From Fonticula alba ATCC 38817 (taxonomy: Eukaryota; Protista; Nucleariida): a stretch of 46,469 bases of DNA. Under the pieces are notes generated by a model that had not been told where the DNA came from, searched no databases, and worked only from the letters and a program-made list of their open reading frames with translations. Where the stretch lies: assembly GCA_000388065.2 (NCBI GenBank), contig KB932201.1; one strand, given 5' to 3'. Made by a program: the position numbers and the translations under genes. This document shows positions 262 through 27,406 of this stretch, piece after piece. Within the stretch, counting starts at the first letter, position 1. Every line of letters begins with the position of its first letter.

Positions 262-2986
262 CTATTCCTTGATGGTCTTCCGCCTGCTTGCGAGGATGGC
301 CGCAATGCGAGCTCGCCGGGCCTCTTGTGCGTCGACCTCAGCCGCGATGCTCAGCAGCTCCTTTTCGACACTGGGTTCAACATGCGGGGTGGCGTTCACC
401 TCCGGGTCATGTTCAGGAGCAGGAGTCGCGATGTCCTCCTCGGCCGGCGGGTGGACAGACGCAACGGTGGCCGCCAGTTGTGGCTGTTCTCTGGCACGAG
501 CCGACGCGGGGCCTACCCACGCCTCGTCACGAGCCACCGCCAGCAGATACTGATAGAAGCCATAGAACCGGTCCCACGGCTGGTCAAAGGATTCCATGAC
601 GTCCGGGGAGTTGGGCAATTCCGAGGATGCAGCCTCGAGCGGCGGGCTCGAGGGCAAGCGCGGCCGACACTCCGAGCACCAGTCCTTCAAAAGCCGCACA
701 TCGGCCGATGAGGCGGGCCATTTGCTGACTTCCCCCGGCGCAATGGGCTGCCAAAAGATGTCAACCTCCGGTGGCCCGGGCTTGGCGGCCACAGATGGCA
801 CTTCCTGGTGCACTCGTTGCCCTATGGAGCGCCGCAGGGAGGCCCCAGACTCGGCATCTGGGACCAAACTGCTCGAGTGGATAAAGGCAGTTAGAGAGCG
901 AGAGGGAGAGGCAGAGAGGGAGAGAGAGAGAGGGGGAAAAATGTCCTCATGAATCTATCGAGCCCGAAGGGGGTCGGCACATGAAAGGGAGGGGAGGCGG
1001 GAGCATATACGCGATATGCACATCTCATATGTATGTGCACAAAGACGAGATATGCTTTCACACGTGTGCATGCGGGTGTATGTGTGGAGGCAAAGGTGCA
1101 GAGAAAGGTGGGAGGGATGGGGCAAAAGAGGGCCGGCTCGCACATGGGTAAGCCATTGGGGAGGGCGTGGGGAATGTGCGTCAAGTGCTGGGCCAGAGTC
1201 TGTCGACGGTCCATCAGAGCCTGGGCGGCCGTGTGATAGCGGTCGCGACAGTCGCACGAAGGCGGCCGCATGGCCGGGCAAACAGCAGGGTGAACCATGC
1301 GCCGGCAAAGCTTGTCCAAATCGCGTCCTGCATCGTAAGCCTCCAACAAGAGACAGAACACCGGATGCAGCGGGGCACCTGGCGCAAGGAAGGCAAACAG
1401 ATCATTGCCCTGCTGTTTCGAGAGGATGGTTTGCTGGGCCCCCGGGCGCCGAGCAGCGGGAAGACCGCCGACGAAGCGCGCTGTCTTCAGGAGGATGCCC
1501 ATCTGCTTGTCAGAGGCAACCTGAGCATGATCAAAGGTGGCCCAGAGACCCCTGCAACGGTGAGTATTCCGAAGGAAGGCAGGGAGAAGAAGGCAACGGG
1601 GCGGGGGAGAACAAGCAGGAGAGGGAGCGAGCGAGGGAGGGCAAGGAGGTGAAAGCGCGCACCTGGCCGCATTCCGGGATAGCGTTTAGCATGCTAGCCC
1701 CGGCAGCAACATCCCGGCGCAGAGCCTCTCGAGCTGCCCGTCGGTCGCGCGCATCATCCCGCCGACGCTTGCGGACCATTTCTGCGGCGAAAAAGCAGCA
1801 CACACAAATTAGCAAGGAGGAGAGATGAGGGGGGGGGGGGGGGGCGAAAAAAAAGGACAGCCCCATCGGCCCACGGGCAAATCCAACGACATACCATTCA
1901 GAAAGACCGAATGATCATGGCGCGCATCGAGGAGCGGCTGAAAGCGCATGACGTCGATGAACATCCCAAGACGGTGGCAACGCCGTTCCAGGGCAGTGGT
2001 GTGTCTCGGCGGGGAGGGTGATGGCCTGGTGGCTGGGCCGGGGCTCGCAACATTGGCTTGGGTGGTCTTCGCACCCCGGACGGGCATCTTGCCAGGTCGG
2101 CTGGCGACAGAGGGGGGTGGCTTGTCTTCCTCGTCTGAGCTGGAGTCCGAGTGGGCGTAGGCCGAAAAGAGATTCGCCAGAGCCCCCACAGGCGCAAGTG
2201 CGGGCCCTGAAGATGGCACATCCTGCTTCGAAGGGGGAGACTGCTCCGCGGACCAGGTGTACTCGTCTTCCGAATCGGAGGAGGCTGGCCAGTCGGACAG
2301 GGTGTCCAGCTCCTCCGGCAGCCGGCCATAGATGACATCATGGACTTGCCCATGGTCGTGCTCAGTCTCGGATTCCACATCCCCCGGCGCGAGGTAGTCC
2401 TGTGGGCGGAATCGCGCTCGGAGAATCGTCCCCTCTGACGCGGGGCCCTTTGGAGAGGTTTCAGCCGGGAAGGTGCGCTCATCAAGCAGATGGTGGACAT
2501 CGAAGCTGGAGACAGACCCGCCCCCAGCCAACCAGGCCAGAAATACGTCAGTCGGGAGCCCTTCCATGATCCCGATCTTCTATTCCTTCCCCTCATCCCC
2601 CCCCCCCCCCTATTTCCATATCTTCGAAGTGGCTTTCAGGGAGAGCGTACGCACCGGTCGAAGGCCATCCGAGGAGTCGACGCGGGGAGAAAGTCCGGAC
2701 GCCAGGGGACCAATAGAGCTCCTGCATCGATGGCATCGGCCGCTGCATCATTTCTCAGGAGGACTGCCGCCTGGCCGCGCACCAGGAACGGGTTGTCCAA
2801 GGCGCGAAAGCGGTCAGCGATGGTGGCAACCTCCGGCGGTGAGAGAGGGGATGTCGGGTCGACTGGTGCCGAAGGAGGACTGGAGGTCATTCCGTCATCC
2901 GATGCGAGCGTCTGTTCCAGCGGGTTGATCATGCGCAGGCGCTTGGTCGGTGGTTGGGCCGGGCTTTCCTCTGGTGAGGAGGGCAT
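262..2986 (-). CDS. SFSWAP: SWAP-family splicing factor (DRY_EERY domain, one SURP, one degenerate SURP), ~681 aa
   Basis: Model complement(join(262..868,1144..1520,1663..1781,1895..2505,2655..2986)) is 2046 nt, in frame, all GT-AG. Splicing rebuilds FLVRGQAAVLLRNDAAADAIDAGALLVPW...AFDR|FDVHHLLDE, resembling the SFSWAP DRY_EERY region (LLVFGYACKLFRDDE...LIPW...IDRYD). ILLKTARFV...SKQQGNDLFAFLAPGAPLHPVF is SURP-like and SFDQPWDRFYGFYQYLL resembles the end of SURP2. The start codon is uncertain. Confidence 0.8.
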
Positions 2987-9276: not shown

Positions 9277-12200
9277 CTAAAATAGGTATGCCGATCCTTC
9301 GTCATCAAAGCGCTCGACTGGCGAGGCACCAAGGCCCAAGAAAACTGTTCTCAGGCTGCTGGCCGCCAGTGAGGTCGACTCAACCGACCGCGCAAGGTGG
9401 TCCGAGTGGTGGCAGAAACGCTCGAAGTCTTGCTGGTCCGATGCAACAGCAGACTGCTCGCCGGGGCGCGAACCATGCAACATCGCCATGTCAATGGGGC
9501 AAAAACATGTCATGTATGGGTGGGAGAGGACGAGAGATGGGCCGGGTGAGCAAACGTCTTGGGGTGAAAGGGGGAAGAGGAAGCCCACCGGGAATCACTT
9601 CCGCGGGCTGAAGCACGCACGAGTACGCTCTTCCAGGTGAGCTGAGCCCGACAGCGCAAGGCCTCCTTCTCGTGTTGGGCCTCGCGCACAAGGAGCTCCA
9701 GCGATTCGATGGTGGAGTAAATGCGCCCGGCGGCGGCCCGGTCGAAATACGCGCGCCGCCGGGTCGCATGCTCGTACAGGCCCTCCAGGATGTGACGCAA
9801 CTCGAGCACACTGTGTGTGTGTGTGTGTAGCGGGGCGCGAGGGAGAGAGAGAGAGAGAGAGGGGGGGGGGCAACAGGGAAGGGGTCAGATAGGCGCCCGG
9901 GGGGACGGGAGCAACGAGGCAAGAGCATGAAGAGGCAAAAGACAGCGCATGGCGGCCAGTCTGCGCGACGGACATCTGTTCAAGTAGCCCCACTCGACGG
10001 GAGCTGAGTGCCAGGCGCTGCTGCAGGCGCAGCCAGGACCACACAGTCTGGCTGTTCCGCTCGAACTCCGCCCGCCCGGCGCGGTTCAGTTCCCGGAAGC
10101 TGGCCTCCAGCGCCAAAACAATGTGTGAAGTGTCCCCGAGAGCGGGAACATCGATCTTCAGCCGGAAAAGCCGGGCGGCGTCAAGCCGGGAGGAGAGAGA
10201 GAGAGAGAGAGGGAGGTGCGAGAAGGCAGGGGGGGGGATGACCGAAGGAAGAAGGGTCAGACACATTCACGCGAGGCATATTGCCACAGGGCCGGGGCCC
10301 GGGGAGAAGAAAAAAAAAGAGAGAGTACCTCACGCAGGCGTGACATCAGCCCTTCGTAGCTGGAGCGGAAGGAGGCGCGGCCGTCCGGGCCGCCACTGGA
10401 CACCAATTGCGCGGGCGAGGCCTCCGACAGGGAGAGCGCTTGGAAATTCGTAAACGGGTTGACCGGATCATTGCCCATCCGGGAGATGGGCGATGACAAG
10501 GCAGACCCCGTCACTGAAGAAGGCACTCGCCCGGGCGAAACGCCGGTGGCCGGCTTGGCCGACCATGCGGTGCCCCGCTGCTGCGACGCACCCAGAGGCT
10601 GGCCACTTTCCGACATGTCGGTGACCGAAATGGAGGGAACGCTGATGCTTGCGCGGCGCTGACCGGCCACCAGGGCCGGGGCCAGAGTGTGCCGACGCCC
10701 GGGTGGCGGCGCCGGCGGCGGGAACAGCGCGTACTGGAAGGCCGCCGGAGGGTGCGGCGCATTGTCCGAGCGCAAGGTCGAGGCGGCTCTCCCGGCACCG
10801 GATAACAGAGACCCGGACATGCGCCGCCTGGGAGACGAATCGATGGCCGGGCCCCGGGCTGCTGGGACCACCAGGGGCGGGGGGTCTTCCCCGTCGCCGG
10901 CCACGAGCGACTGCGTCGAACCAAAGCCCCTCCCGCTGTCCTCATCCACCGGCGACAGGACCCCCAATGACAGAGGTCCCATCCCCGGCTCGCCGCCGAG
11001 AGGACGCTCGGCCATGGCTCCCGGCGAATCGGCCAGCGAAGCCCGCGGTGAGCCCTCCAGCGAGCGGAGCTCTCCCAGATAGTCGCCCCCAGCCAGCGTG
11101 GCACTGCCGGGCGGTGTCGGCCGGACCGACTGCGGGGCGGAGGCGCTCTGCCAGTGCTGCACGGCGGAGGCGGCCGTGGCCGAGGCACTGGCGGCCGCGG
11201 CGCCGGCCGCCACTGCCCCGCCCCCGGGCGTCGCCGTGCCACCAGCTCCAGCCGATCCGCCAACCAGCCCCGGCAAGTGAAGTGACCCGGAGAAGGACCG
11301 GCCCAGGTGTGACCGGGGACTGGGCCGCGGGCGCCCCAGGGAGCGCGAGTCTCCGGGAGTCGACTGCCCCGAGCTCGCCGTCGATGGCAACACCCCCGCC
11401 GCATGGGACCCACCTCGGTCAAATTGCACCAGATGGTCATGCCCCGCGGCATCGGGAGTTGGCCGGATCAGCAGCTGCTGGAAGGCTGCATCAGCCTGGT
11501 TGACCGCCTGCTCGATTTCCTGATCCACATCGGTGGTGAAGATGCTGGGAACATGGCCCGGGCTGGTGGCCGGGGATCGAGGCGACCCGGGCGAGCTCCC
11601 GGCCAGCGGCATGGACACCGACTGGCCGGCCGAGTCGAGCTCGGGCACCTGGAAGACCGAAGCCTCGGGCGCCCAGGCATTGTCGAAAGGCGCGTCCCGG
11701 TCCAGCAGGGGGGGTGGCCGCGGCCGCCGCATGCCCTCCGAGCGCTGTGCCGCCTGATCGAGCCACCATTGTTGCGAGTGCGGCTGCGGGCGGGGCGGGA
11801 AATAGTGCTCCTGCGGTTCCGGATACTGGTGGATCGGCTGGGGCTGACCATGCTCCTCGTCCTCCTCGTCAAACCCCGGCAACAGCAGCAGTCGGCCTCC
11901 AAGCAGCATCGAGCGGAACTGCTGGTAAACCGTTTGCTCCACTTGCTGGCGGTAGTGCCTGAACATGACCTTGATGGCTGCCAGATTGGACCGGTGCTCC
12001 GAGTAGGAGTCCTTCAGCTTGCGCTTCATCTCCTGCATCTGCGCCGCGTGCGCTTGGGCTTGCGTCTGCAGGCGCTTCTCCAGGATGGCCACCCGCTCGC
12101 GCAGCTCCACCAGCGGGTGATCGATGTCGCTCTAGAGCGAGGGACGTCCAAAGGGGGGGGGGAGGAGGGGAACGTCAGCCGAAGAGGCCCCACCGCGGGG

Positions 12201-15200
12201 GAGGAGGAACACCGACAGGAGGCACAAAAAGCGGCTCCCGCGATTGACCCAAGCCCCTGGCGTACCACTTCAAAGTCCACATGGATGGACTCCACTTCTG
12301 ACAGGGGATCGGGCAGGTCGGCCGAGATGAGGCCAGTGAAGTCGTGAAGAACATCGCGCGCCCCATCGAGGGCAAACTCCTACGCAAGGGATCCAGCTGG
12401 TGAGTAATACCGCCGCGAGTGCAGGAGCATCTGCATGCTGGCACACGGGAAATCGGCGAGAAGGAGGGAGAGGGAGGGAGGGAGAGGGAGGGAGAAAGGG
12501 CAGAGACAGAGACGAGCAGAGAGGGCACCTTGTATTTGCGCCCGAGGAACTCGCCAAGGATCATCGGAAAGTACCGGGTGTCCTGTCCGATTGTCCGCTC
12601 CATGACAGATGCCAGGGTGATGCAGGACTTCAATTTGGTGGCCAAAAAGTCGGTCTTGACTTTCAGGGCATCCACTGCCAGCATTGTCCCGCGGCGCAGC
12701 AACCGGGAGGTTAGCAAGCCGGAGCATCCGAAGGCCGGCGAAGGGAAGTAGGCAGCGGAAGAGCAGGGCCGGGAGGTGGGAGCGCACTTTTTTCCTTAGC
12801 CGCGGCATTCAGCCGGTCAATCGCTTGACTACATTCGATCTTCAGACGCTTGTCATGCTCAATGAAAACCTCATGCACAAGCGCCTGGGTCTTGGCGTGA
12901 TTCTGTATCGGCGTGCAGGGCGAGGGGCGGGGTGGAGGGCGGCGAGGAGGGGATGCAAAGCAAGGGTGGGGAGAGGGGGGGCGCATGCCAGAAGTGTTGT
13001 GAGAGTGAGTCTCGAGGGAAGTGGAAAAAGCAAGAAGAAATCCAAGTCATCCCCTCCCCCCGCCCCCCTCCCCAGCTCCACGTACACTCTCGAGCACCGG
13101 CAGCAGGCCGGAAATGTTGATAAGGGACTTCGCGATCGACTCATTGTAATGCCGCAGCCGGTGGCACAGCTCCCCGAGGTTTTGCCGGAAGATCTTATCA
13201 TCGCTGAGGCTGATGGTTTGGGTGTTGCGTGGAAGGTTGCTGACCGAGCGCCGACCGGTCTGGGGAGTGTGCAGGAAGGCTGTTGAGGGCTCCTCAACGG
13301 CCATGGTACATGCAATGCACAGCATCCGTCCCTCAAATGGGTCGTACATGCGGAAGGGCTTTTGGTGCTGCTTGCAAATCCAGAAGCTCGTTGAGGCCGC
13401 GCTGGGCCGCGGGCCGAAGGACGTCTCCATCGGGAAGCCGGATAGCGCCGGACCCCGAGGGCTGGCCAGAGCCAGGGCTTCGGTTGTCCCGCTGGAAGCG
13501 CCGGCGCCGGGGGCGGAAGCGCCCGCGCCACCGCCCCCCGAGGTCGCCACCACAGTCGTCGAGAAGTGCGCGCGAACAACCTCGTGCTTGCGGTACATAC
13601 GCGCCTGGTGGACATCCTGATAGCAAGGGTCACAAATGAATGAGGCACACGTCTTGCAGTACCAGTCCACTGAGGGGCCGTTGCAGTTGGCTGGCAAGCG
13701 GGAGAATATGGTCAGCGAGGGAGGGGAGGGTAGGGGGGGGGGAGGGGTGGAAGAAGAGGAGAAAGAGAATGGCAAAGGGGGTAAAGAAAAACAAGCAGGG
13801 GGTGGCCAGTGGAGGGAGACAGGTCGAACGGCGGTCCCCTGGCCAGGGGACACCGAGGCGCACCACAAACATTTCGGTTCATGTTACTGCTGGCCGTGGC
13901 TCGGCTCATGTGAACCACATACTCTGTGTGAAGGTCTCGCTCGAAGGGACGATTTTTCTGGACGATGGAGTTCTTCTTGCAGACCTCACAGTCAACCACA
14001 GTGCCGAAGGCTGTGGCCCCATCCCGGAGAGGGGAAAGAGGGAGCAAGAGGAGCGTAGAAGTCACCGCAGGGTACATGTGCGTGCGTGCGTGCGTGCGTG
14101 AGAAGGAGAAGGAGAAGGGGGATGATCACAAGCAAGTCGGCGAAGCAGGCAAGGGGTGACATCGAAGGGAGCACGCACGCCGATCCAAGACATGAAAGCC
14201 ACAGCACGTATGAAGACAATCCAGGAACATGGGGTTCTCGCCGACTGGCGACACATGGCACACACAGCACGTGAGCGGGTCCACAAGGCGACTGAAGTCG
14301 ATGATCCCAAGTGCCGGCAGGATGGCCCTCAGCTCTTGCGAGTAGCGCGGCACTGCCACCCGCAGAGTGGCCGTCGTCACTGAGATCCCTCGTTGCAGGG
14401 GGGGCGGCTTGAAGCGACCCCCGCTGGCGCTGGAAACCGTGCCCCCGGGCGAGGGGGCCGCCGAGCCGGGGCTCGGCATGATGGCGGTCGGCGAGGGCGG
14501 GGCACTGGAACCAATGGTGGCACGTCGGCGCCCGGGACTGGTGCCCGGCCCGGGCCCGGGCCCGGGCCCCGGGAATTCCACACTACCGCTGCCGCTGCCA
14601 CTGCCGCTGTTCCACGCGCCGAAGCTCTCGTCATCCGAGCGGACCGGGCTCGAGGCTTCGGACTCGGAGCCGGAGCCACCGACACCCCGACCGGACGGCA
14701 ATCCCAGGAAGACCAGGGGCGACAGTTCGGCATTGGGCCGAGGGGAAGTCCCGCCGGCCAGCGTCGCCCCGGCCAACTCCGCATCTTCATCCTCCTCCAA
14801 GGGGCTGGGCAGGTCCTCATGGCCAAAGACGTATGTCAGCGTCGAGGGCGACGGAGGCGACAGCCTTGGAAGGGGCGAGGGAGGCCCGCTGCCTCCCGGG
14901 CCAGTGTGGGGGATTTTCAGGGGCCGCGACGGCGGCGAAGCCGAGCCCATTCCCTGTCCCTTGGCCCGGGAGTGGTGCGGGGCAACCACCAGCGGCGAGA
15001 GGAAGGTCCCCTCGGGAAGGGCACTCGTCCCGGCGGGCGATGTGATCGCCAGCAAATTGGCCGCCGGGTCATTGAGCAGCAGGGAAGGGCTACTGGAAGC
15101 CAGCAACAGGGGGTTGCTTTCTGACCGAGTGACCAGGGGCACCACACGTCCACCCGGCCCGGGGGATGGCATCACCGATGATCCCACCATGCCTGACAGG

Positions 15201-15321
15201 GAATGATGCGAATGGTGCAGGCGGACATTCTTTCCGGAGGGAGCACCGCCTCCCAGGCCCGAAAAGGCGCTCGAGCTTGCTTCCCCCATGTTTGGGAGGT
15301 GCCCGGACAGACGTCGGACAG

Positions 15322-15371
<50 letters not shown>

Positions 15372-15568
15372 AGATGGTGGTGGTGGTGGGGGGGGGGAGG
15401 ATGATGGCTCCCTGGGGTATCACCATGAGCTGAGGGACCAGTTGGCTCATCCTGCACGGTGATCGAGATTGAGGGATTGCTGCCGAAGGTGACATCGGCG
15501 GCCTGCAGCTGGTCCGCCTGGCCACCGCCGACCAGAGGCATTTCACTGCTGCGCCGCCGGCCGGCCAT
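9277..15568 (-). CDS. TRIM/RBCC-like protein (RING, B-box1, degenerate B-box2, coiled coils), ~1620 aa, probable E3 ligase
   Basis: Model complement(join(9277..9453,9627..9810,9974..10155,10329..12131,12266..12379,12529..12674,12788..12902,13086..13690,13864..14010,14179..15568)) is 4863 nt and in frame. RING: CCVC-x13-CLHTCCGFH...CEVC. B-box1: CANC...WYCKTCASFICDPCYQDVHQARMYRKH. B-box2-like: CKQHQKPFRMYDPFEGRMLCIAC. Helical coiled-coil segments follow. The AAG acceptor at 10156 is the least certain junction. Confidence 0.8.
15324..15388 (-). repeat. CAC/CAG trinucleotide run encoding polyH and polyQ in the TRIM-like N-terminus
   Basis: The + strand reads (CTG)n then (TGG)n; the translation is HHHHHLQQQQQQQQQQQQQQQQ. 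Confidence 0.9.
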
Positions 15569-16493: not shown

Positions 16494-19400
16494 CTAGTGG
16501 CGAAGGAGCTCGGTGAGCTGCGCGCGTGTGGGTTCGCTCAGCTGCCCGACCATCACCGGCCACCGGTCCCCGGCGCGCAGGCTGTACCCATTGAAGAATT
16601 GGCGGAGCCCGGCCGCGAAGGGTCCCGACATGGACCGCCAGTTGGCCACCACATCACAGAGCATGGAGAACAAGGCCTGCTCGGCCGGGGGGTTTTCGGC
16701 AATGGCACACGAGAGCCCGGTGAAGGCGCTCTCCAGCATGGCATCAAGCGGCATGGCAATGGCCACCGAGCACCAGTCTGCCAGGAAGTGCGGCAGGAGG
16801 GAGGCCAGCTCCCCGGGGCACGAGTGCCCCAACCGGCCGAGGGTGATGGCGGCATTCTCCCGCAGAGAGCTGGGAACCGTCACCGAGGACAGGATCTTCA
16901 TCAGCCGCGGCAGGACCTCCATCACAAAGGGCCGGATCGGCCCGCTGAAGTCTTTGGTCATCTCGCCAAGAGCCCAGCAGGCATTGTTACACACCGACAC
17001 GGAATCCCGGTCCAAATTGCCCACCAGGTCCGGCATGATGAGGGACACATTGTCCGGGCCAATGTGCGCCGGGCTGGCGACCGTCAAGTCGCCCAGCAGA
17101 CCGAAGGCCGACTGTCGGACCTCTTCCGAGTCATCGCGGATGCAGTGCTTGATCAGCTCAATCAGCGGCGTCGGGCAGGAGGCCACCAGCGGCTCGATGG
17201 CTCCCTTTAGCCCCTCGGCGATGCCGGACAGCAGGTCGAAGGACACCACGATGAAGGACTTGTCCGGCTCCGGCAGGTTGGGGTTGTTGTCGTAGGCCTA
17301 ACCAAGTACATGCATACCCGCGTGTGTGTGTGTGTGTGTGTGTGCGTGTGTGCGTGTGCGTGTGTGTGTGCGCGTGTGTGTGCGCGTGCGTGTGCGCGTG
17401 CGTGTGTGTGTGTGTGCGTAGGTGCGCGCGCGCGCGCGCGCGCAGAAACACGGACAGGTCAGTAAATGCTTCCGTAAAGAGACAGCTCGCAGGCGGCAGG
17501 CGAGAAGAAGGAGCCGGATGGGGGAAGATCGCACAATCTCCGCATTGATGGTGTTGACAATGATTCTAACTGCCCGGTTGAAGCACACCCCGCTGTAAGG
17601 GAGGAAGTTCTCCCGCAGGGTGTTCGCCAGGGTGGACAGACACTCAAAGAGGGAGAAAATGTCGGTACTATCGTCCGGCGTGGCATCCCAGCGCTGCAAC
17701 AGCGGCGGCATCAAAATGCTCAACAGAGACTCTTCACAGATGGCGCTGCCGACATTCTGCACCAGCGTCGCCAGGGTGTCGTACATGAGAAGCAGGTTGT
17801 TTTGCTAAGCAGCGCAGGGGGACCAAAGTGCGGTGGCGGAGGGGTCAGTCGTCAAGAGAGGCCAACAGACCGGGGATCAATCGGGGAGAGAACAGACCGC
17901 GTCTCAGGCGCACCTGGAACAGGGAAAAGGCCTTGATCAGCGGCGGGAGCACCGAGTGCAAGTATGCCACCATGGCCAGGCCGATGGACTCGCTGATCAG
18001 GGTGAATGCGCAGCAGGCGGCACCCTGAACGCGCTTTGTGTTGTCGTGCATGGATCCCAGAATGGCTGACAGAACGCGCGGCATGTATGGCTCGAACTCC
18101 GGCGCCGAGTGGAACCACGCGGCAAACCGGCTAACCGACCAGCACGCGGTTTCACGCACAAGCGGCTACATTGAAGCAAGAGCAAACCAGCGGGCAGAGG
18201 GGGAGGCCGAGGGGAGAGGGGGGGGGGCCATATGTGTGAGCCAGACGCCGAGAGAGGAGGCCGCAAGGAAAACCAAAATTGCGACGCGGGCGGGGCAGGA
18301 TACGCACATGCGGGTGGCGAAGGTTCTCCAGCAGGAACTCGAATGCTCCGATGGCCTGGGGAAATCCGGGGAACACATGCTTGGACGCCACGCCGAGGAC
18401 CAGGATGCCAGCCTCGCGGGGCTTCCACTCGTCAGAGCCCAAGTAGGGCTCAAGGGTGCTCAGGACCGCGGGGCCGATCTCGGCTGAGAACTGCGAGATG
18501 ATCTTCTCCAACAGGGTAGCCGAGTACTGTTGTCAAAAGGGCGAGTTGAGGGGGGGGGGGGGGGGGGGGCGACATGGGTTGGTCAGAGGATGGTCCCAAC
18601 ATCTCGGAGAAGGAGCAGAATGGAGGGAGAGGGGCGGGGAAGCCCAAATGGCGCGAGGGATCGACGGTCATAGGGAGGCACAGCGAAAGCATACCCGGCG
18701 GAGGTTCCAATTCTGGACCTCACCATCATCCTCATCATCATCGTCATCATCATACCCGGCATAGTCGGCGCTTTCGTCAAAGTCATCCCCATCGAAGTCC
18801 TCATCTTCATACTCCTCCACAAAGGACTCCGACCCGGCGCCCGAGGTCTGGAGCCGCCGCCGGTGGAAGCGAGGGCGCAGCTCCTCCGGGCGATCCGGCA
18901 CTGAGGCATCCTCGATGATGCCGTAGGACCCCTCGGCATAGATGACATTCTGCACCAGAATCGGGAGGAGACTGTGCGCGGGCGAGGAGCGAATGGAAGA
19001 ACGGAGGGAAGGGGTGAGCAAAAGCCCACCCAGATGGCAGCAACGGTGGGAGCCCAAGCTGGGGGGCGGATGATCGCAAGCAGGGACATCGAGACGCACC
19101 GCTTGATGAAGGGCACAACCACCGAGTACAGGTCGGAAGTGTGCTGGAAGACAAGGAGCCAGAACTCGCAGGCTTGCAGGGCCACCGGCTCATCACGGTC
19201 GGTGATGGACAGCAACATGTACTCCAGGATCTTGTCGATAAAGGGAAGCAGCGAGGCCGGAGATACCTCGAAAATGTACACCAGCGCCTCGCACACGTGC
19301 TTGCGCACGAAGGAGTCCGAATCGGTGGCCGTGTTGGAGAGGGACTGATTGCACGAGCAAAGGACGAGGCCAGGATGTCAGGCGCCGGTGCGGAGGAGAC

Positions 19401-21073
19401 GAAACACGGGAGAGCGAGAGCGAGAGNNNNNNNNNNNNNNNNNNNNNNNNNNNNNNNNNNNNNNNNNNNNNNNNNNNNNNNNNNNNNNNNNNNNNNNNNN
19501 NNNNNNNNNNNNNNNNNNNNNNNNNNNNNNNNNNNNNNNNNNNNNNNNNNNNNNNNNNNNNNNNNNNNNNNNNNNNNNNNNNNNNNNNNNNNNNNNNNNN
19601 NNNNNNNNNNNNNNNNNNNNNNNNNNNNNNNNNNNNNNNNNNNNNNNNNNNNNNNNNNNNNNNNNNNNNNNNNNNNNNNNNNNNNNNNNNNNNNNNNNNN
19701 NNNNNNNNNNNCCCCCCCCACCCCACCCCAGAAGTGTGCATGCTGTGCTGGGGGTGGGGTCACCCTGACGACCGGGAAGCCGCACCTGCCCGAGACTGGC
19801 TGGGACTAGGTGGGACGAGACGAGGGGGCTCGGTGCGGGGCGCGGGCTGCGGGCGGGGGACGGGGGGGCGGGGGGCTGCCTGCCCAACGCGCATGAGGTC
19901 CAACGCGTCGGCAGTCCCCCGGGGGCGCGGTGCAGGACCAGTGCACCGGACACACATTGACTGGCATGCCGAATTCCTCGCATCCATTTTACGGGCACAC
20001 ACTTGTGGGGATGGGCCAGGAAAAAGGTGCCACTGGCCGGGGGCCAGAGGGTGCCACACATGGGGCCTCTGCGGAGGACCATCAACACGGGCAGGCCACC
20101 ACGTGAAGAAAACAACAAGCGATTGCCGCATGGCGCTACCGCGAGTGCCGCCGATCATTCTGCCGTCGGACGTGTTTGCCGGCCACCGAGTCCCTACGAA
20201 CGTGTCGCTCTTGGATGGGCACTTGGGCGTCTGTTGCGCACTCTCAAGTGCCACCGCGGCGGTCGGTGACGCCGGTGGCCAGCCCACAGGACCAACCACA
20301 CCCCTCCTTCCCTTTTCCGCCCCGCCACACGGTGTCCTAGCCTCTCCTTCCCTCTCTCCCTCTCTCCCTCTCTCCCTCTCTCCCTCTCTCCCTCGGCAAG
20401 GGAGGAGTGCGAAAAGAAGCGCACGGTCACAAAGACGTCCATATGCTGGGCGAGGATGGCTGGCTGAAGGAGGATAAACTGATTGACACAGGAGATGGCC
20501 ACACCGCGGATCTTGGCAACCGGATGCGAGGAGAACATCACAAAGGCCGGGATCAGGGTCTCCAGCGACTGGTCCGTCAGATCGGCCGCCGAGTCCTCGC
20601 AGATCATCAGGAGGGTGGCAAAGACGCCCTGCATTCGGGGGAACAGTAGACCGGCAAGGGCGTCAGAAGCTCCATCAGCAGGGGGTTGCCCCGGGATCGG
20701 GCCGAGAAAAAGGCCCGAGCCAAATGCCGCAGTTGCATACCTCCAAAATGAGCATATCCTGTGTCTGGAGCATGTTCACCAGGTACGGCAGAAGTTCCGG
20801 CCAATCGTGGATTGAGCCGATCGACAGGAGCGTCGAGATGATGGTGGCCACGGTCGACCGAACCAGGGGCTCCTTGTCGCCCACCAGACGAAGGCACTGC
20901 AGCTTGATGTACACCTTGGCCGTAGGGTGGAAGGTGTTGTACTTACTGCGGATGAGGTTCTTCAGCAGCAGACCAGCGATGGCTCGCAGGCCGGGATCCT
21001 CCACCGACGGATCGGTGAACAGGTACATCAGTGTCATGGAGTAATCTGGGAACCGGGTCAGCCCATCCAGAGT
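16494..21073 (-). CDS. TNPO1: Transportin-1 / importin beta-2 (Kap104), 5'-partial
   Basis: Exons 20741..21073, 20425..20628, 19100..19344, 18695..18971, 18308..18526, 17914..18165, 17535..17804 and 16494..17297 total 2604 nt in frame. Family motifs seen: GLLLKN, DWPELLP, the HEAT8 acidic loop ending WNLRRYSA, DKSFIVVSFDLLSGIAEGL, EVRQSAFGLLGDL, SVCNNACWALGE and ENAAITLGRLG. The first exon is not visible and probably lies in the gap 21219-21695. Confidence 0.95.
17321..17441. repeat. Compound (TG)n/(CG)n microsatellite in the last TNPO1 intron
   Basis: About 120 bp of nearly uninterrupted purine-pyrimidine alternation (gtgtgt...gcgtgt...gcgcgcgcgc). Confidence 0.9.
19427..19711. other. Assembly gap inside TNPO1 intron
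   Basis: Run of N flanked by (GA)n and poly(C). Confidence 1.
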
Positions 21074-21218
21074 CTGTAATGGGAGGGCCGAGGTGCGGGG
21101 AGGCCGGGAATGGGAACCGGCGGCGGGGCAGGCGGTCACAAGTTAGCACGGCCATGTTCGAGTGTGCGATGCAGCCTTGAGCTTTGTGCAGCGGGGGGGG
21201 ATGGTGGGATCGGGGGGG

Positions 21219-21695
21219 NNNNNNNNNNNNNNNNNNNNNNNNNNNNNNNNNNNNNNNNNNNNNNNNNNNNNNNNNNNNNNNNNNNNNNNNNNNNNNNNNN
21301 NNNNNNNNNNNNNNNNNNNNNNNNNNNNNNNNNNNNNNNNNNNNNNNNNNNNNNNNNNNNNNNNNNNNNNNNNNNNNNNNNNNNNNNNNNNNNNNNNNNN
21401 NNNNNNNNNNNNNNNNNNNNNNNNNNNNNNNNNNNNNNNNNNNNNNNNNNNNNNNNNNNNNNNNNNNNNNNNNNNNNNNNNNNNNNNNNNNNNNNNNNNN
21501 NNNNNNNNNNNNNNNNNNNNNNNNNNNNNNNNNNNNNNNNNNNNNNNNNNNNNNNNNNNNNNNNNNNNNNNNNNNNNNNNNNNNNNNNNNNNNNNNNNNN
21601 NNNNNNNNNNNNNNNNNNNNNNNNNNNNNNNNNNNNNNNNNNNNNNNNNNNNNNNNNNNNNNNNNNNNNNNNNNNNNNNNNNNNNNNNNNNNNNN
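21219..21695. other. Assembly gap that probably hides TNPO1 exon 1 and the TNPO1/PRPF31 shared promoter
   Basis: Run of N. TNPO1 lacks its N-terminus on one side, and the PRPF31 ATG lies 10 nt past the other side. Smaller gaps occur at 3192-3201, 3810-3819, 25038-25047, 29360-29409 and 40906-41012. Confidence 0.9.
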
Positions 21696-21704
21696 CCCAT
21701 CATC

Positions 21705-24200
21705 ATGTCCAAGTCGGAGCACATTCTCGATGATGACCTGCTCAGCGACCTGGCCGCCCTGGACGACCATGTAAAATCACAGCCGGGAGGCGATCGCACG
21801 CGCCACGGCATGTCGGCGGGCCTCGGTGCGGAGGATGATCCCGAGGCCGACGCATTCATGGACGACCTGGATGACCTGTTTGGTGATGATGGCGATGACA
21901 GCGACGGCGAGGGGGCCGATGATCCGGCCAGCGAGGCGGCGCGCCTGGCCCGGCAGCGCGACGCCCAGGCCTCCCAGCTGGCTGCCCGGGATTTGGCCGA
22001 GCTGGATACCCAGCACCTGGAGATCTCGGACATTGCTAAGCTGACTGGCTCGGCCCGCTTTTCGGAACTGACCTCGGTATGTTCCCGCCTCAATTTGCCT
22101 CCGGTCCCGGGGAGTTGGCCTTGTACTGACCACATGCCACCACCACACTGGCCATCTTGCGGGGCTATGGCGTGACATGGCGCGGTGGTGGGCCTTCTCT
22201 TAGCTGATCGATACCGCCCTGTCCGGGCCGCCGCCGGTCATTGTCGGCAACCTCTCCGATCACCAGGAGTACAACCTCATTTTGCGGTCGAATCGCCTGG
22301 CCTTGGAGATCGACGACGAGATGGACCTCATCCATAAGGTATGTGTCCTGGTCTTTGACCGCGTGCTCGATCACCGATCTCCCTTTCCCTTCCGTGGCCG
22401 CCCTGCCATTGGTCCTGACATTGGTCCTCACATCGGTCTTGGCGTCCCTCTCCCCGGTGCCTGGGCGCCCTGCTGACCGGCCTATCGGCCCGCCATTCCA
22501 GTACCTGCTTGATTACTACAAGCCCAAGTTCCCGGAGCTGGCTTCATTGGTCGCCTCCCCGGTGGAGTATGCCCGGACGATTCTCCTGATCGGCGACGAA
22601 ACCGACATGTCCAAGGTGGATCTCGGGTCGTTGCTTCCTCCGGCCACGGTGATTGTCGTGGCCACGGCTCGGATCAATGCCGAGCCCGGACCCGGGAGCG
22701 TGCAGATGCGCCGCGTGCGCGAGGCCGCCACCATGATGGTATCCCTGTCGGAGGCTTCTCTGCTGGTATGGACATTCCCTTTGCCCTCCTCATCCTGCCT
22801 CTGTGTCTGCCCTCTCCCTTGGGTCTTCTGACCTTGCGCTGCCTTTGCCCTGCGCTTGGCCCGGTGAAAGATTGTCCGCTTCATCCAAAGCCGCATGGCT
22901 TACATCGCGCCGAATTTGCACCGGCTGCTGGGCGCCACGGTCGCCGCACAGTTGATGACTGCTGCCGGTGGCATCGAGGCCCTGGCACGTATGCCCTCCT
23001 CGAACATCCAAATTCTTGGCCATTCGCGGCGCACTCCGCAGGGCTTGGCCTCCACCGGGACCCAGCACATGGGCTTCATCTTCCAGGCCCCGGCCGTGCG
23101 AGAGGCTCCGGCACTCGTTCGCCGGCGGGTGGCCCGGCAGATCGCCGGCAAGACGGCCCTCGTGGCCCGGGTGGACGCCTTCCGCCAGTCGTCGGATGGC
23201 AGTGTGGCCATCCGGTACCTGGATGATCTGGCCTCTCGTATTGAGCGCTGGATGGAGCCGGGTCAGGCCAAGCGCGAGGACATCCTCCCCGTCCCGGAGG
23301 AGAATAAGCGCAAGCGGCGCGGTGGCCGACGGTGCGCCTACATGGGCTTTCCTGCCATCCAGCCATGGCCTTTCCTGTCCTGTGCCAAGATCCCCGCCCC
23401 CCCCCCCCCCCCCCTCTGACCTTGACACCATTAACATCTTTTTCTTCTTCCTCCTCTTCTTCCTCTTCTTTTGTTCGCCACTCCCTCCCCCTGGCCCACC
23501 ATAGGGCTCGGAAGCAGAAGGAGGTGTATCAGATGACGCAGTTGCGTAAGGCCCAGAACCGGTCAGCCTTCGGCCAGGCCGAGGAGGAAATCATTGGCGG
23601 TGATGGCGATCTGATCGGCCTCGGCATGATTAACCAGGGGATCGGTGCCAGCGGACAGCGGATCCGAGTGGACAAGAAGACCCAAGGTATGTTGGAACTG
23701 TGCTCGCTGTCTGCACCCCCCGCTTCCGCCTCCTCCGCCCCCCTCCCCCCCCCGCCCCACGCTCTCCTCTCGCCATTTCCCTTTGCTCGCTCGCTCGCTC
23801 GCTTGCTCTCGCACTCTCTTCTCCACCACTGGACACCAGCCTTACCCAACCAATGCCAACATGTCGACATCCAGTCAAGTCGCGCAAGGCACGCGATGAG
23901 CTCTTGCGCATGCAGACCCAGCGCATCATGCCCTCGGCACTTCTGTCGCAATCGGGTGTGGCCTCGACGTATAGCTTCACCGCGCAGCGGGATGGCGGTT
24001 TCACGACGTCCGCCACGCCTGCACACCAGGCAAATGGGATTTTCACCGGGACGCAAGGCGCCACCGGCCGGGGGACTACCACCGGTGGAGCCACCGCCAC
24101 CGCTCCGGCCCCCGGTGTGCCACTCACCCCGGCCGAGCGTGTGCGCCAGGCTAACGAGAAGTGGTTCGGCAATAAGGGTTTCGGCGCTGGATCAAACTGA
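21705..24200 (+). CDS. PRPF31: U4/U6.U5 tri-snRNP protein Prp31, ~579 aa
   Basis: join(21705..22076,22204..22338,22502..22765,22871..23331,23505..23686,23875..24200) is 1740 nt. Motifs: EYNLILRSNRLALEIDDEMDLIHK|YLLDYYKPKFPELASLV, FIQSRMAYIAPNL, ARMPSSNIQILG, ARVDAF, KRKRRGGRRARKQKE, TQLRKAQNR and SGVAST. The ATG lies 10 nt after a gap, so an upstream start cannot be excluded. Confidence 0.95.
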
Positions 24201-25195
24201 TGTGATTGCTCCCTTTTGTGCTTCTCTTTCCCTCTTTTCCCTCTCCCTTCCCATCGCCCAAGGTGGTGCATATCAGCCAAGCGGATGGGGAGGGGGGGGG
24301 GCGGGAAAAACACAGACACCATTTTGTCTCAATGTGATGCCTTGGGGCCGCCTTGTCGGATGAGGACCCTGCAGCGAGAGGCGACGGGTGTGGCCACATG
24401 TGTCCTCATGGCCCCTATGCCGCGAAAGATTCGTGTCTACCCTCGCAGCCGCATGCATGTGTGTGTGTGTGAAAAGAAAGACACTGGGAGGGAGGCATGC
24501 GAAAAGAGGGTAAGAAGGGAGGGAAGGAGGAATGCTGTATTGTCGCTGCGCAACGTTCAGGACGAGCAGCGAGTGGAAGGGGGGAAGGGGGGAAGGGGGG
24601 TATAAAATGTGAAGTACAAGGAACAAGAACCCGACAAATGGGAAAGAGTGAAAGCATGCAGCCGAGGCCAGCCAGGACCGCGCAGTGAGTAGGAGTAGCG
24701 GGGGGGGGAGCAGGTGTGGAGGCGGTGGCCAGTGAGGGGCACAAATGCGCTCGGCACAGGGAGGGGAGAGGGGGCAGGCGAGGAAAGCAGCTGGCCAGGG
24801 AGAGGGGAGGGGTGGGAGGGGAGGAGGAGGAGGAGAGGAGAAATGGGTTGGCGTGGCGTGGCCGGGGATGGCCGCGAGGGGGTGAGAAAAAAGACACTCG
24901 CGCTCGAGGTCACAAGGGGTTCCGGAGCGCGGGCCCAGGTGCTATGCGTGGTGTGCGGGGCAGAGGGCGGGGGACATTCCGCCGAGCGAGAGGGGGGGGC
25001 GGGGCGGAGGATCTACCATGAGGAAAGCAAAGGCGGGNNNNNNNNNNGGAGGATGCGGATAGTGATTGACGGGGGGACGCGCCGGCGCACCCCCAGAAGT
25101 GCCAATACTAGCCCCGCAATGACTAGGAAAGAGAATGTGGAGAGTGAAGAAGGAGGGGAGGATGAGGGGGGAGAGGGGAGGGGCGAACAACGCGT

Positions 25196-26831
25196 CTAGG
25201 AGGACTTCTTGTTAGTGGCAGAGGCCGCCGGGGGGGGTGGCCCGTCGGGGGGAGGCGCCGCGGCGCTAGCACCCTTGGCGGCGGCAGCGGACTTGGTGCT
25301 GGAAGCCTTGGTTTGTTTTGCGCCACCGGTAGCCGGAGGCTTCCGCCCAGATCCAGCGGTCTTGGCTGGGGCCCTAGGGGCTGGCCGATCGGCAGCCCCG
25401 GCGGGGCCTGTGGCTGAGGTGTTGTTGACAGCGGCAGCGGTAGTGGTAGCGGCGGCCGAGTAGTCCCCAGTGGCCAGGGTAGCCGAACTGTCGGCTGACA
25501 TGTCCATCGGGCGTGAGTCTTCCCCACGAGGAGGATACTCAAGCGACCGCTCAGCCAGGAAGGCGCGCATCCGGAGGATCTCATGGATCAGCCGCATGTT
25601 GTGGTCACGCAGGAACTCCAGATACTCGTTGGCTGCAGGAGAGAACGGGGGGAGTGTGGATATGTGTGCGTGTGCGTGTGTGTGTGTGTGTGTGTCTGTC
25701 AGCGACCCGGCACCAAAGGCGACATGAGGCGGGAGATGAAGCAGTTGAAGAAAACCGGCGTACTCTTCAGCAAGATGGTGGCCTTGGAAAAATTGGTCCC
25801 GGTCAGCGAGGGGACCAGCTCGGTCATGTGCTTGAACGCCTGGCGGATGTTATTCCGGCGCTTCTTCTCCGAGAGGATGTGATTCCGGCGCTTCTCCTCG
25901 TCGGTCAGCATGCCACCTCCGTGGCGGGTGCCCGTGTAGCTGATGATCGGCGGCCCGGCCAGGCTATTAGACAGCCCGGCTGCCACGGCTTTGATTTCCT
26001 CCGCCAGCTGCTCGGAAGACATCTGTGGCTTGGCACCACGCGCGAGGGAGGGCTTCACCGTCGAGGTGGGCATACGTGGCTCGAGGAGAGCATGCTCAAA
26101 GGCCCCGAGCTGACCATGGCGCCCGGCATTACTGGTTGCCGTGCCGATCCGGGAGAAGTCCAGATCACCCGGGAGAAGATCCTGCAAACCCTCGGATTTG
26201 ACAGCCGATGAAGCGCCCGATGCGCCGGAAAGCTGCTTCAGTAGCATGTTCAACTCGCTGGTGCTCAACACACCAGACCCATTGGAGCCATCTGGCGAGC
26301 CGAGGCCACCAACCGGCAGGGTGGGAGTTTGTGACGCGGACAGTGAATCCGGCGAGGAGAGTGGGCTCGAGTCGCCGGCAGCCGCATTGACTGCTGTCCG
26401 AGCAGCAGCAGCAGCAGCGGCGGCGCCGGCGGCCTTTCCAGTGGCCTTCCGAGGGGCGGCAGAGGCCGAGGCACGCCCAGCCCGGCGCTTGGGTGCCGGC
26501 GGGGCGGAGCCGTCCGCGAGACCGGTGCCTGGCGACCCAGCACCCGAAGGAAGGAGCGACTCTTGGCTGGGCTCGTAGTCGCCCCCGGCGGGGTTCGCCC
26601 GGCGTTGACGCTTGGCAATGCTGGCAGAGGACCCATCGGTGCTCACAGCTGAGCAGGAGGAGGAGAAAGTGGAGGGGAGGAGATGGGCCGGAGGAGAAGA
26701 GAAGGCAGGACAAAAGCTTTTGCGTGAGTATACATATCTATAAATGTGTGTGTGCGTGCATGTGGGTATGCATGTGGGTATGTGGGTATGACTGCGTGCA
26801 AGAATGGACCCCACGCACCGGGACGCTTGAT

Positions 26832-26874
<43 letters not shown>

Positions 26875-27406
26875 GAGATACCCACCAGGTCGAGAGAGAG
26901 CCCGGTATTTGGATCGACACCCTGCGTGTGATGAGGTGCCTGAAGTGACTGCTGCTGTTGCTGCTGCTGCCGCTGCTGTGGCTGTTGTGGCTGCTGCTGC
27001 TGCTGCATGTAGGAAAGATGCTGCGTCTGCTGCGAATGATGGTGATGATGATGCGCCTGTTGTGGGTGGTGATGATGCGCCTGCTGTCATAGAGGGGGGA
27101 GGGGGGGGGGGGGTGTTGCGTGAGAATGTAAGAAACACAGGGGGGGTACATCAGGGCCAGCCGGACCCGTGAAGAGCGACCCCTCCCGGGGACATACCGG
27201 ATGCATGTGCATGGCAGTGCCATTGACACTGGAGACATCATGAATTGATTGGCGCAGGGACTGGTCCGAAGCCAGGTCATGACCGGAGCTCGCAACCGAA
27301 GCGAAGTCCCCACCGCGGCCAAAGAAGGCCTGGGACTGCTGCGGCATCTTGGTGGCGCTAGCAGCCCAGTGCGGAGCGCCCGGCTGCTGCAGGTGGTGGT
27401 GGTGCC

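Follow-up and report, generated by a model that had tools for sequence, protein, structure and literature searches.

Does the complete tripartite motif, a RING finger followed by two B-boxes and a coiled coil (the TRIM or RING-B-box-coiled-coil, RBCC, architecture), occur outside animals? The question is raised by a gene on the minus strand of a 46,469-nucleotide stretch (hereafter the window) of contig KB932201.1 of Fonticula alba ATCC 38817, in which a first-pass annotation had seen a premetazoan or convergent class of TRIM proteins. Fonticula alba is a slime mould of the nucleariids, which belong to the fungal branch of the opisthokonts. Subfamily A, that of TRIM37 with its one B-box and a MATH domain, has been described as the only TRIM group outside animals, and a RING/B-box/MATH ancestor has been inferred for TRIMs (PMC3503706). 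Our analysis inclines us, if not strongly, to the view that the RBCC core of this native, non-animal gene is a remote relative of animal RNF207, which together with its C. elegans homologue makes up TRIM subfamily F, with the range 'Bilaterians' (Marin, 2012; PMC3503706).

We take the locus to be a real, native, multi-exon gene whose splicing is predicted from sequence logic. Open-frame reading and phase arithmetic give seven firm exons between 15568 and 10329 on the minus strand and three probable ones, with a stop at 9277-9279. By arithmetic from this exon model the predicted product has about 1,620 residues and consists, from N to C terminus, of a disordered head of about 433 residues, the RING, B-box1, B-box2, heptad helices, a disordered stretch of about 500 residues and a short helical tail. 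All searches, family scans and folds described here were run exon by exon. The zinc-finger core is laid out as follows (a slash marks an exon-intron boundary):

15568-14179, minus strand: exon 1, firm, a 741-codon open frame; donor C/GTGCGT, phase 1
14179-14269, minus strand: last part of exon 1, with the first six RING ligands (C-x2-C-x13-C-x-H-x2-C-x2-H)
14010-13864, minus strand: exon 2, firm; donor TGTG/GTGCGC, phase 1; last RING ligand pair (C-x2-C, then Lys-Lys), a 37-residue linker, then the first Cys of B-box1
13690-13086, minus strand: exon 3, firm; donor GTACGT; 201 residues with both B-boxes and the start of a helix
13584-13690, minus strand: B-box1 from its ligand 2 to ligand 8, opening exon 3; Pfam match
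13377-13583, minus strand: inter-box linker, disordered, Gly/Ala/Ser/Pro, about 65 residues; in the exon 3 model, residues 43-96 have a predicted local distance difference test score (pLDDT) under 50
13269-13376, minus strand: B-box2, C-x2-H-x7-D-x2-E-x4-C-x2-C, with a further H beyond

Joined across intron 1, the RING reads C-x2-C-x13-C-x-H-x2-C-x2-H-x11-C-x2-C, with eight ligands at canonical spacing. Its sixth ligand is His, Glu stands in the usual place of Pro between the last two Cys, the linchpin position (the residue after the last Cys) is occupied by Lys and not Arg, and a hydrophobic Val lies at the usual E2-contact position within the first C-x2-C. With exon 2 joined on, B-box1 has a complete ligand set, C-x2-C-x8-C-x2-C-x4-C-x2-C-x4-H-x7-H: the last full codon of exon 2 supplies its first Cys, the next codon spans intron 2 and the junction reads C-A-N-C. 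Two zinc motifs are thus completed by the predicted joins alone, namely the RING over intron 1 and, over intron 2, the opening C-x2-C of B-box1; that intron 2 splits this Cys pair, besides intron 1 splitting the RING, had been missed in the first-pass annotation. B-box2 had been called degenerate, and it is: zinc site 1 has all four ligands, and site 2 has D/E replacing C/[CDH] and only a distant His.

The RING, B-box1 and B-box2 patterns each occur once in the six frames of the window, on the minus strand and in TRIM order, where block shuffles lead one to expect 0.05, 0.00 and 0.00 occurrences, respectively. The Pfam model zf-B_box (PF00643) matches B-box1 at E 2.9e-6, its 27.8 bits exceeding the cut-off of 24.1; this is the only family above cut-off in any exon, B-box2 going undetected by Pfam and exon 2 by itself giving no Pfam family or profile match. 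The order RING, B-box1, B-box2 and probable coiled coil after the predicted splicing, as first reported for this locus, is upheld. Exon 3 was modelled with AlphaFold using an alignment of RNF207 segments, and a second model covered B-box2 and the helix. The pLDDT is 75-91 for B-box1 and, in the two models, 86-90 for B-box2. The best fold match of B-box1 is B-box1 of TRIM28, at a root-mean-square deviation (rmsd) of 1.6 Å, with CONSTANS B-boxes also matched; the top matches of B-box2 are the B-box2 domains of TRIM41, TRIM5alpha, TRIM39 and TRIM21, at non-significant E-values (0.5-1.4). Searching the PDB by sequence, exon 3 found only CONSTANS-like 2 (phmmer E 0.08) and low-complexity antibody-linker noise, and the RING half had no match.

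The family to which these zinc fingers lie closest was sought by an exhaustive HMMER (phmmer) search of exon 3 against 1.84 billion representative proteins at E<=1e-3, which returned a sole match, a nematode protein of 828 residues (P0001; 35.7 bits, E 7e-4). In UniProt and NCBI the relatives of P0001, including that of C. elegans (P0008), bear the name 'RING finger protein 207' or 'probable RING finger protein 207 homolog'. When 14 of the nematode proteins were combined in an RNF207 profile, it aligned with exon 3 at an hhalign probability of 96.5% (E 9e-10) with both B-boxes colinear, B-box2 included. Gene and nematode proteins have several non-ligand strings in common, namely CANC, HQARM[FY]xxH, [EK]P[FY] and LxCIxC, the first of these, made at the junction of exons 2 and 3, being the invariant CANC of nematode RNF207. 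The first RING half in turn aligns with the N-terminal RING of nematode RNF207 (BLASTP E 5e-5; hhalign E 3e-4), so that exons 1 and 3 find their matches, correctly ordered, in one family. With 34 nematode RNF207 proteins as targets, exon 3 reaches 14-36 bits, compared with 13.5 and 5.5 bits for two tandem-B-box TRIM-NHL controls. In the reverse direction, the RNF207 profile finds this gene alone in the 31-Mb genome, scoring the B-box1 locus at 29.8 bits; the match is best in both directions, the RNF207 members being nematode only. Several nematode RNF207 proteins also have a B-box2 that is degenerate at the third ligand (Ser), and the degenerate B-box2 would therefore be a family trait rather than decay.

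The first-pass annotation had held that its inference would fail if the protein fell in a known family, and in part this is the case, since the zinc-finger core adjoins RNF207 (the sole search match, reciprocal in the genome) and hence does not form a family-less class of its own. The idea of a premetazoan TRIM remains a fair one, in the form of a remote RNF207-like member; those of a separate class and of convergence find no support here.

Word-index protein searches retrieved nematode RNF207 proteins and two TRIM-NHL proteins only; the list is nematode-only because the search was seeded with a nematode query, and the lack of any vertebrate RNF207 or non-animal relative in it is accordingly of little meaning. 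By shape, the nearest entries of the ESM Atlas were clusters of the two-B-box proteins TRIM71, TRIM9 and RNF207, and chordate RNF207 clusters appeared only in this search; by features, exon 3 led to generic short B-box clusters (TIF1-beta and others). A features search of the same atlas with the RBCC part of C. elegans RNF207 gave animal TRIMs and RNF207, together with one B-box cluster of 417 aa in which the few members with a label are ciliates (Ciliophora), a lead suggesting that RNF207-like or RBCC-like proteins may exist in further protists.

A number of observations weigh against kinship with RNF207. The single database match, at 35.7 bits and E 7e-4, is weak, and other RNF207 representatives, vertebrate ones included, did not pass the 1e-3 threshold in the exhaustive search. 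The similarity is limited to the RING and B-boxes, with about 25% identity (20-27%) over roughly 100 residues. Exons 2 and 4-10 had no match to the RNF207 profile, with hhalign probabilities of at most 1.2% for each of exons 4-10. The domains of RNF207 include a C-terminal homologous region (PMC13615925). In the nematode members this region matches Pfam AIP3, and when they were compared with the gene exon by exon, neither an RNF207 C-terminal/AIP3-like region nor an AIP3 match in any exon was detected. No relative was found in metagenome contigs with exon 3 or a five-sequence alignment, where there were pattern matches of which tblastn confirmed none. Pfam TRIM_CC has no match in the gene, a weak test since the helix is cut into five exons, and the fold-search E-values for the B-box models are all above 0.1. 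The RING lies 433 residues from the N terminus and has an unusual sixth ligand; like the coiled coil and the C-terminal tail, it was scanned as separate exon pieces. Finally, every junction of the gene is a prediction from sequence logic. Given the missing RNF207 C-terminal region and a RING that is not N-terminal, we use the term 'RNF207-like' for the gene and refrain from classing it as an RNF207 orthologue. Elsewhere in the genome, the only AIP3/Bud6-type domain (56 bits) is found at G000:C2:919922-920660, minus strand, presumably in the Aip3/Bud6 orthologue.

How, then, might the likeness to RNF207 have arisen? Descent from an opisthokont ancestor is the reading that we prefer, while holding it close to the balance point. 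In its fuller form, it would trace an RNF207-type ligase, complete with RING, coiled coil and two B-boxes that differ from each other, to the ancestor that animals share with fungi; nucleariids would have kept it, while in true fungi it would be lost or unrecognisable. We can put this scenario forward only tentatively. The same facts could reflect an RBCC protein that was convergent or independently assembled, its B-boxes resembling those of RNF207 through generic constraints and chance. The low identity over only about 100 zinc-finger residues, the one database match at E 7e-4 and the missing common C-terminal region would all suit such an origin, as would the differences from RNF207 in RING position, linker lengths and the 65-residue inter-box insert; B-box1 is, moreover, equally near the plant CONSTANS-like B-boxes in fold and nearly so in sequence. 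Generic constraints would not, however, readily account for two boxes that are colinear and have non-ligand strings in common (CANC, HQARM[FY]xxH, [EK]P[FY]...LxCIxC), nor for RNF207 alone passing the threshold although the searched set includes very many TRIMs and plant BBX proteins, and the two TRIM-NHL controls scored below nearly all RNF207 proteins. We therefore consider convergence unlikely. That the gene is contaminating or horizontally acquired animal DNA, from a nematode, is suggested by nothing but the fact that all retrieved relatives are nematode proteins, which reflects the bias of a word-index search with a nematode query; an identity of merely 20-27%, a GC content of 61-69% like that of the window and a position within a 3-Mb contig, flanked by genes of like composition, exclude it for practical purposes.

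A gene-model artefact, in which exons 1-2 come from another transcript or are non-coding and the real protein is made up of B-boxes and coiled coil only, would do away with the RING and with it the tripartite motif. It draws on the nature of the evidence for the junctions, on the frequency of long chance open frames at 65-70% GC, several of which overlap the locus on both strands, and on a codon bias that is weak over the polyglutamine (polyQ) part of exon 1. Yet without exon 2, B-box1 misses its first Cys, with no in-frame Cys upstream in the intron, and the joins complete two zinc motifs with canonical spacing. RING half and B-boxes are matched, in this order, by one set of RNF207 proteins, the introns are uniform in length and in the type of their donors, and the chance of a 741-codon open frame, estimated from base composition, is about 1e-7. 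An artefact is thus improbable. A further alternative accepts the RBCC layout and sees in the protein a pseudoligase or scaffold, whose RING no longer transfers ubiquitin and which acts through assembly by its coiled-coil and disordered regions. The His at the sixth ligand, the Glu for Pro between the last Cys pair and the Lys for Arg at the linchpin are what such a protein might show, half of the B-box2 zinc ligands are lost, and polyQ and long disordered regions suit condensate formation. Several TRIMs are known to be inactive pseudoligases, linchpin changes lowering or abolishing activity (PMC13591260). All eight RING positions are nevertheless Cys or His at canonical spacing, a hydrophobic Val occupies the E2-contact position inside the first C-x2-C, and Lys at the linchpin reduces activity without abolishing it, lowering the rate by about two thirds (PMC13591260). 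From its sequence the RING looks weakened rather than dead, and although a weak ligase and a pseudoligase are both possible, we rate a true pseudoligase as quite unlikely.

The rest of the gene model, together with the head and the helical parts of the product, is as follows:

14270-15568, minus strand: N-terminal head, about 433 low-complexity residues from the ATG at 15568, Ser/Pro/Gly-rich, with His and polyQ
13086-13202, minus strand: first coiled-coil segment, the start of a long helix at the end of exon 3
12902-12788, minus strand: exon 4; acceptor ending in tacag/, donor A/GTGCGC, phase consistent; helix continued
12674-12529, minus strand: exon 5; GT-AG, donor GTGCCC, phase consistent; helix continued, then a break
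12379-12266, minus strand: exon 6; GT-AG, donor GTACGC, phase 0 on both sides; acidic, non-heptad linker
12131-10329, minus strand: exon 7, a 624-codon open frame; donor GAG/GTACTC
11919-12131, minus strand: head of exon 7, second heptad helix, about 65 residues
10329-11918, minus strand: remainder of exon 7, about 530 disordered Pro/Ser/Gly/Ala-rich residues, with a GC content at third codon positions (GC3) of 0.81 in frame and no Pfam domain
About 10155-9974, 9810-9627 and 9453-9280, with the stop at 9277-9279, minus strand: probable exons 8-10, a helical tail of about 180 residues

The seven introns of the firm model are all GT-AG and 113-183 nt long, with phases agreeing at every join, and the donors are uniformly of the GT[AG]C type (in order, GTGCGT, GTGCGC, GTACGT, GTGCGC, GTGCCC, GTACGC, GTACTC and GTACTC). 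In the probable exons 8-10 the frames are open, the acceptors are AG and the donors GTACTC, and the introns (about 160-173 nt) resemble the others; in-frame GC3 is 0.76, 0.85 and 0.62, respectively. The donor of exon 8 is uncertain, AT/GTCCGT being the sole phase-compatible choice for the acceptor at 9810, and none of the three matched a family in Pfam or the RNF207 profile.

In both AlphaFold models a helix begins 28 residues past B-box2 and extends from residue 163 of exon 3 to the exon end at a pLDDT of 93-96. By a crude, home-made heptad score compared with shuffles, residues 160-195 of exon 3, 1-28 of exon 5 and 9-71 of exon 7 score above shuffles, the last being the strongest heptad signal in the gene. 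Exon 4 (38 residues) has a helix-forming sequence with a heptad score not above shuffles, and exon 6 gives no heptad signal. Taken together, models and heptad score make it likely that a coiled coil follows the B-boxes, and by analogy with other TRIMs we infer that it would form an antiparallel hairpin. No SPRY, NHL, filamin, MATH, PHD or CCT domain was matched by Pfam in any exon at E<=1; the first five of these had already been noted as lacking.

At the other end of the protein, the RING seems to be placed behind about 430 residues of Ser/Pro/Gly/His/polyQ sequence, if the predicted start codon is right. The head has no Pfam domain, only low-complexity chance matches. Synonymous-codon bias supports the head frame only from about 15600 downward, with no frame favoured further upstream, which fits the ATG at 15568. 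The bias is weak around the CAG/polyQ run of exon 1, so that the true start may be somewhat further in. With the 741-codon frame and the bias from about 15600, the long disordered Ser/Pro/Gly/polyQ extension first described here, of about 430 residues, finds support. The CAG (Gln) run itself comprises about 19 codons (window 15360-15420, minus strand), and several introns, as well as the upstream region, contain (CT)n and (CA)n microsatellites, whose open-frame translations are SLSLSL or THTHTH.

Set beside RNF207, the predicted protein has the same order of RING, B-box1, B-box2 and helical region, the same opening C-A-N-C and HQARM[FY]xxH in B-box1, the same C-x2-H-x-[EK]-P-[FY] ... L-x-C-I-x-C in B-box2, and likewise no SPRY, NHL or MATH domain. 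It differs in that its RING, with the ATG at 15568 as start codon, begins near residue 434, as against about residue 8 in nematodes, in having His rather than Cys as sixth RING ligand, and in the disordered insert of about 65 residues between the B-boxes, which none of the aligned nematode RNF207 sequences has. At about 1,620 residues it is also longer than the nematode proteins, which have about 820, its gene has no detectable C-terminal homologous/AIP3-like region, and its host lies outside the 'Bilaterians' range stated in 2012 (PMC3503706).

The predicted order RING, B-box1, B-box2, coiled coil is equally that of the animal two-B-box TRIMs (TRIM71, TRIM9, MID1-type, TRIM28, PML), which supply the closest animal folds (TRIM28 for B-box1; TRIM5alpha, TRIM41 and TRIM21 for B-box2). 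Unlike them, the Fonticula gene had no C-terminal NHL, filamin, COS-FN3-SPRY or PHD-bromo module found in it and left Pfam TRIM_CC unmatched, and its sequence similarity to them is below that to RNF207. With the TRIM37-like proteins of subfamily A it has in common a RING and B-box ligase architecture in a non-animal eukaryote; it differs from them in its two B-boxes and in the lack of a MATH match in any exon at E<=1. Plant CONSTANS-like/BBX proteins (PDB 7vsp, 7vsq) resemble it in B-box1 sequence (phmmer E 0.08) and fold (rmsd 1.6 Å) and in having two tandem B-boxes. They are, however, without RING and coiled coil, their boxes are adjacent and alike, and a CCT domain is often present, whereas the Fonticula gene has a RING before the boxes, a second box of the C-x2-H type and no CCT match.

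The mechanism expected by analogy is the ordinary TRIM one (PMC13591260). The long helix would pair antiparallel as a dimer, either end of which would carry a head made of RING and B-boxes; the RING would recruit ubiquitin-loaded E2 and the B-boxes would modulate self-assembly. The two long disordered regions (polyQ and Pro/Ser-rich) and the helical tail might select partners or substrates, or drive clustering.

Our claim is an evolutionary and modest one. The two-B-box layout may be older than animals. If descent from an opisthokont ancestor is correct, animals would not have invented the complete tripartite motif with two B-boxes, the TRIM37-like proteins would not be the sole pre-animal TRIMs, and the two-B-box layout would move back to the opisthokont ancestor. 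A literature search found no paper describing this gene or combining TRIM, B-box and Fonticula, and none linking RNF207 with unicellular opisthokonts. The gene would offer a unicellular, culturable counterpart for RNF207, a little-studied cardiac and cancer-linked ligase, and it is a natural set of variants in one protein: RING ligand 6 is His, B-box2 has a half-lost zinc site, and the RING follows a disordered head of 430 residues.

The host genome comprises 31.3 Mb in 214 contigs at about 65% GC, and the gene sits inside a 3-Mb contig, with a GC content (61-69%) matching that of the remaining window, which is about 0.61-0.70 apart from one dip. The size and composition of the genome and the shortness of the introns speak against an animal host, in line with the first-pass annotation, which had taken the genome to be apparently non-animal. 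Only three loci in the genome match the Pfam B-box model at E<=1. The second, L003 (G000:C55:2314-4377; open reading frame (ORF) 637-1704, minus strand), lies on a 4.4-kb contig and combines a B-box with an MSL2-type CXC domain (PF16682, E 2e-7). The third, L004 (G000:C4:607850-610972; ORF 817-2229, minus strand), within a 930-codon open frame, has an ANCHR-like B-box and the start of a DUF2009 'non-canonical E2' domain. These two loci were rejected as paralogues of the RBCC gene, since their architectures (B-box with MSL2-CXC, B-box with DUF2009) differ from its own.

Directly upstream of the RBCC gene in the window and on the same strand, the last exon of a transportin-like gene ends with a stop about 930 nt before the RBCC ATG. 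Beyond it, positions 18001-22000 have a GC content of 0.48-0.54 and hold six ORFs of 241-337 aa without a Pfam family; this low-GC stretch may contain more of the transportin-like gene, in the form of upstream exons, or else a mobile element or a repeat. The neighbouring genes recognised in the window are:

16494-17249, minus strand: last exon of a transportin/importin-beta-like gene (HEAT_EZ, HEAT, IMB1 TPR)
23332-24360, plus strand: gene with a Prp31 C-terminal domain
25702-27138, minus strand: Gln-rich basic helix-loop-helix gene (HLH / INO4-type)
43756-45693, plus strand: protein kinase gene, its domain interrupted by an intron

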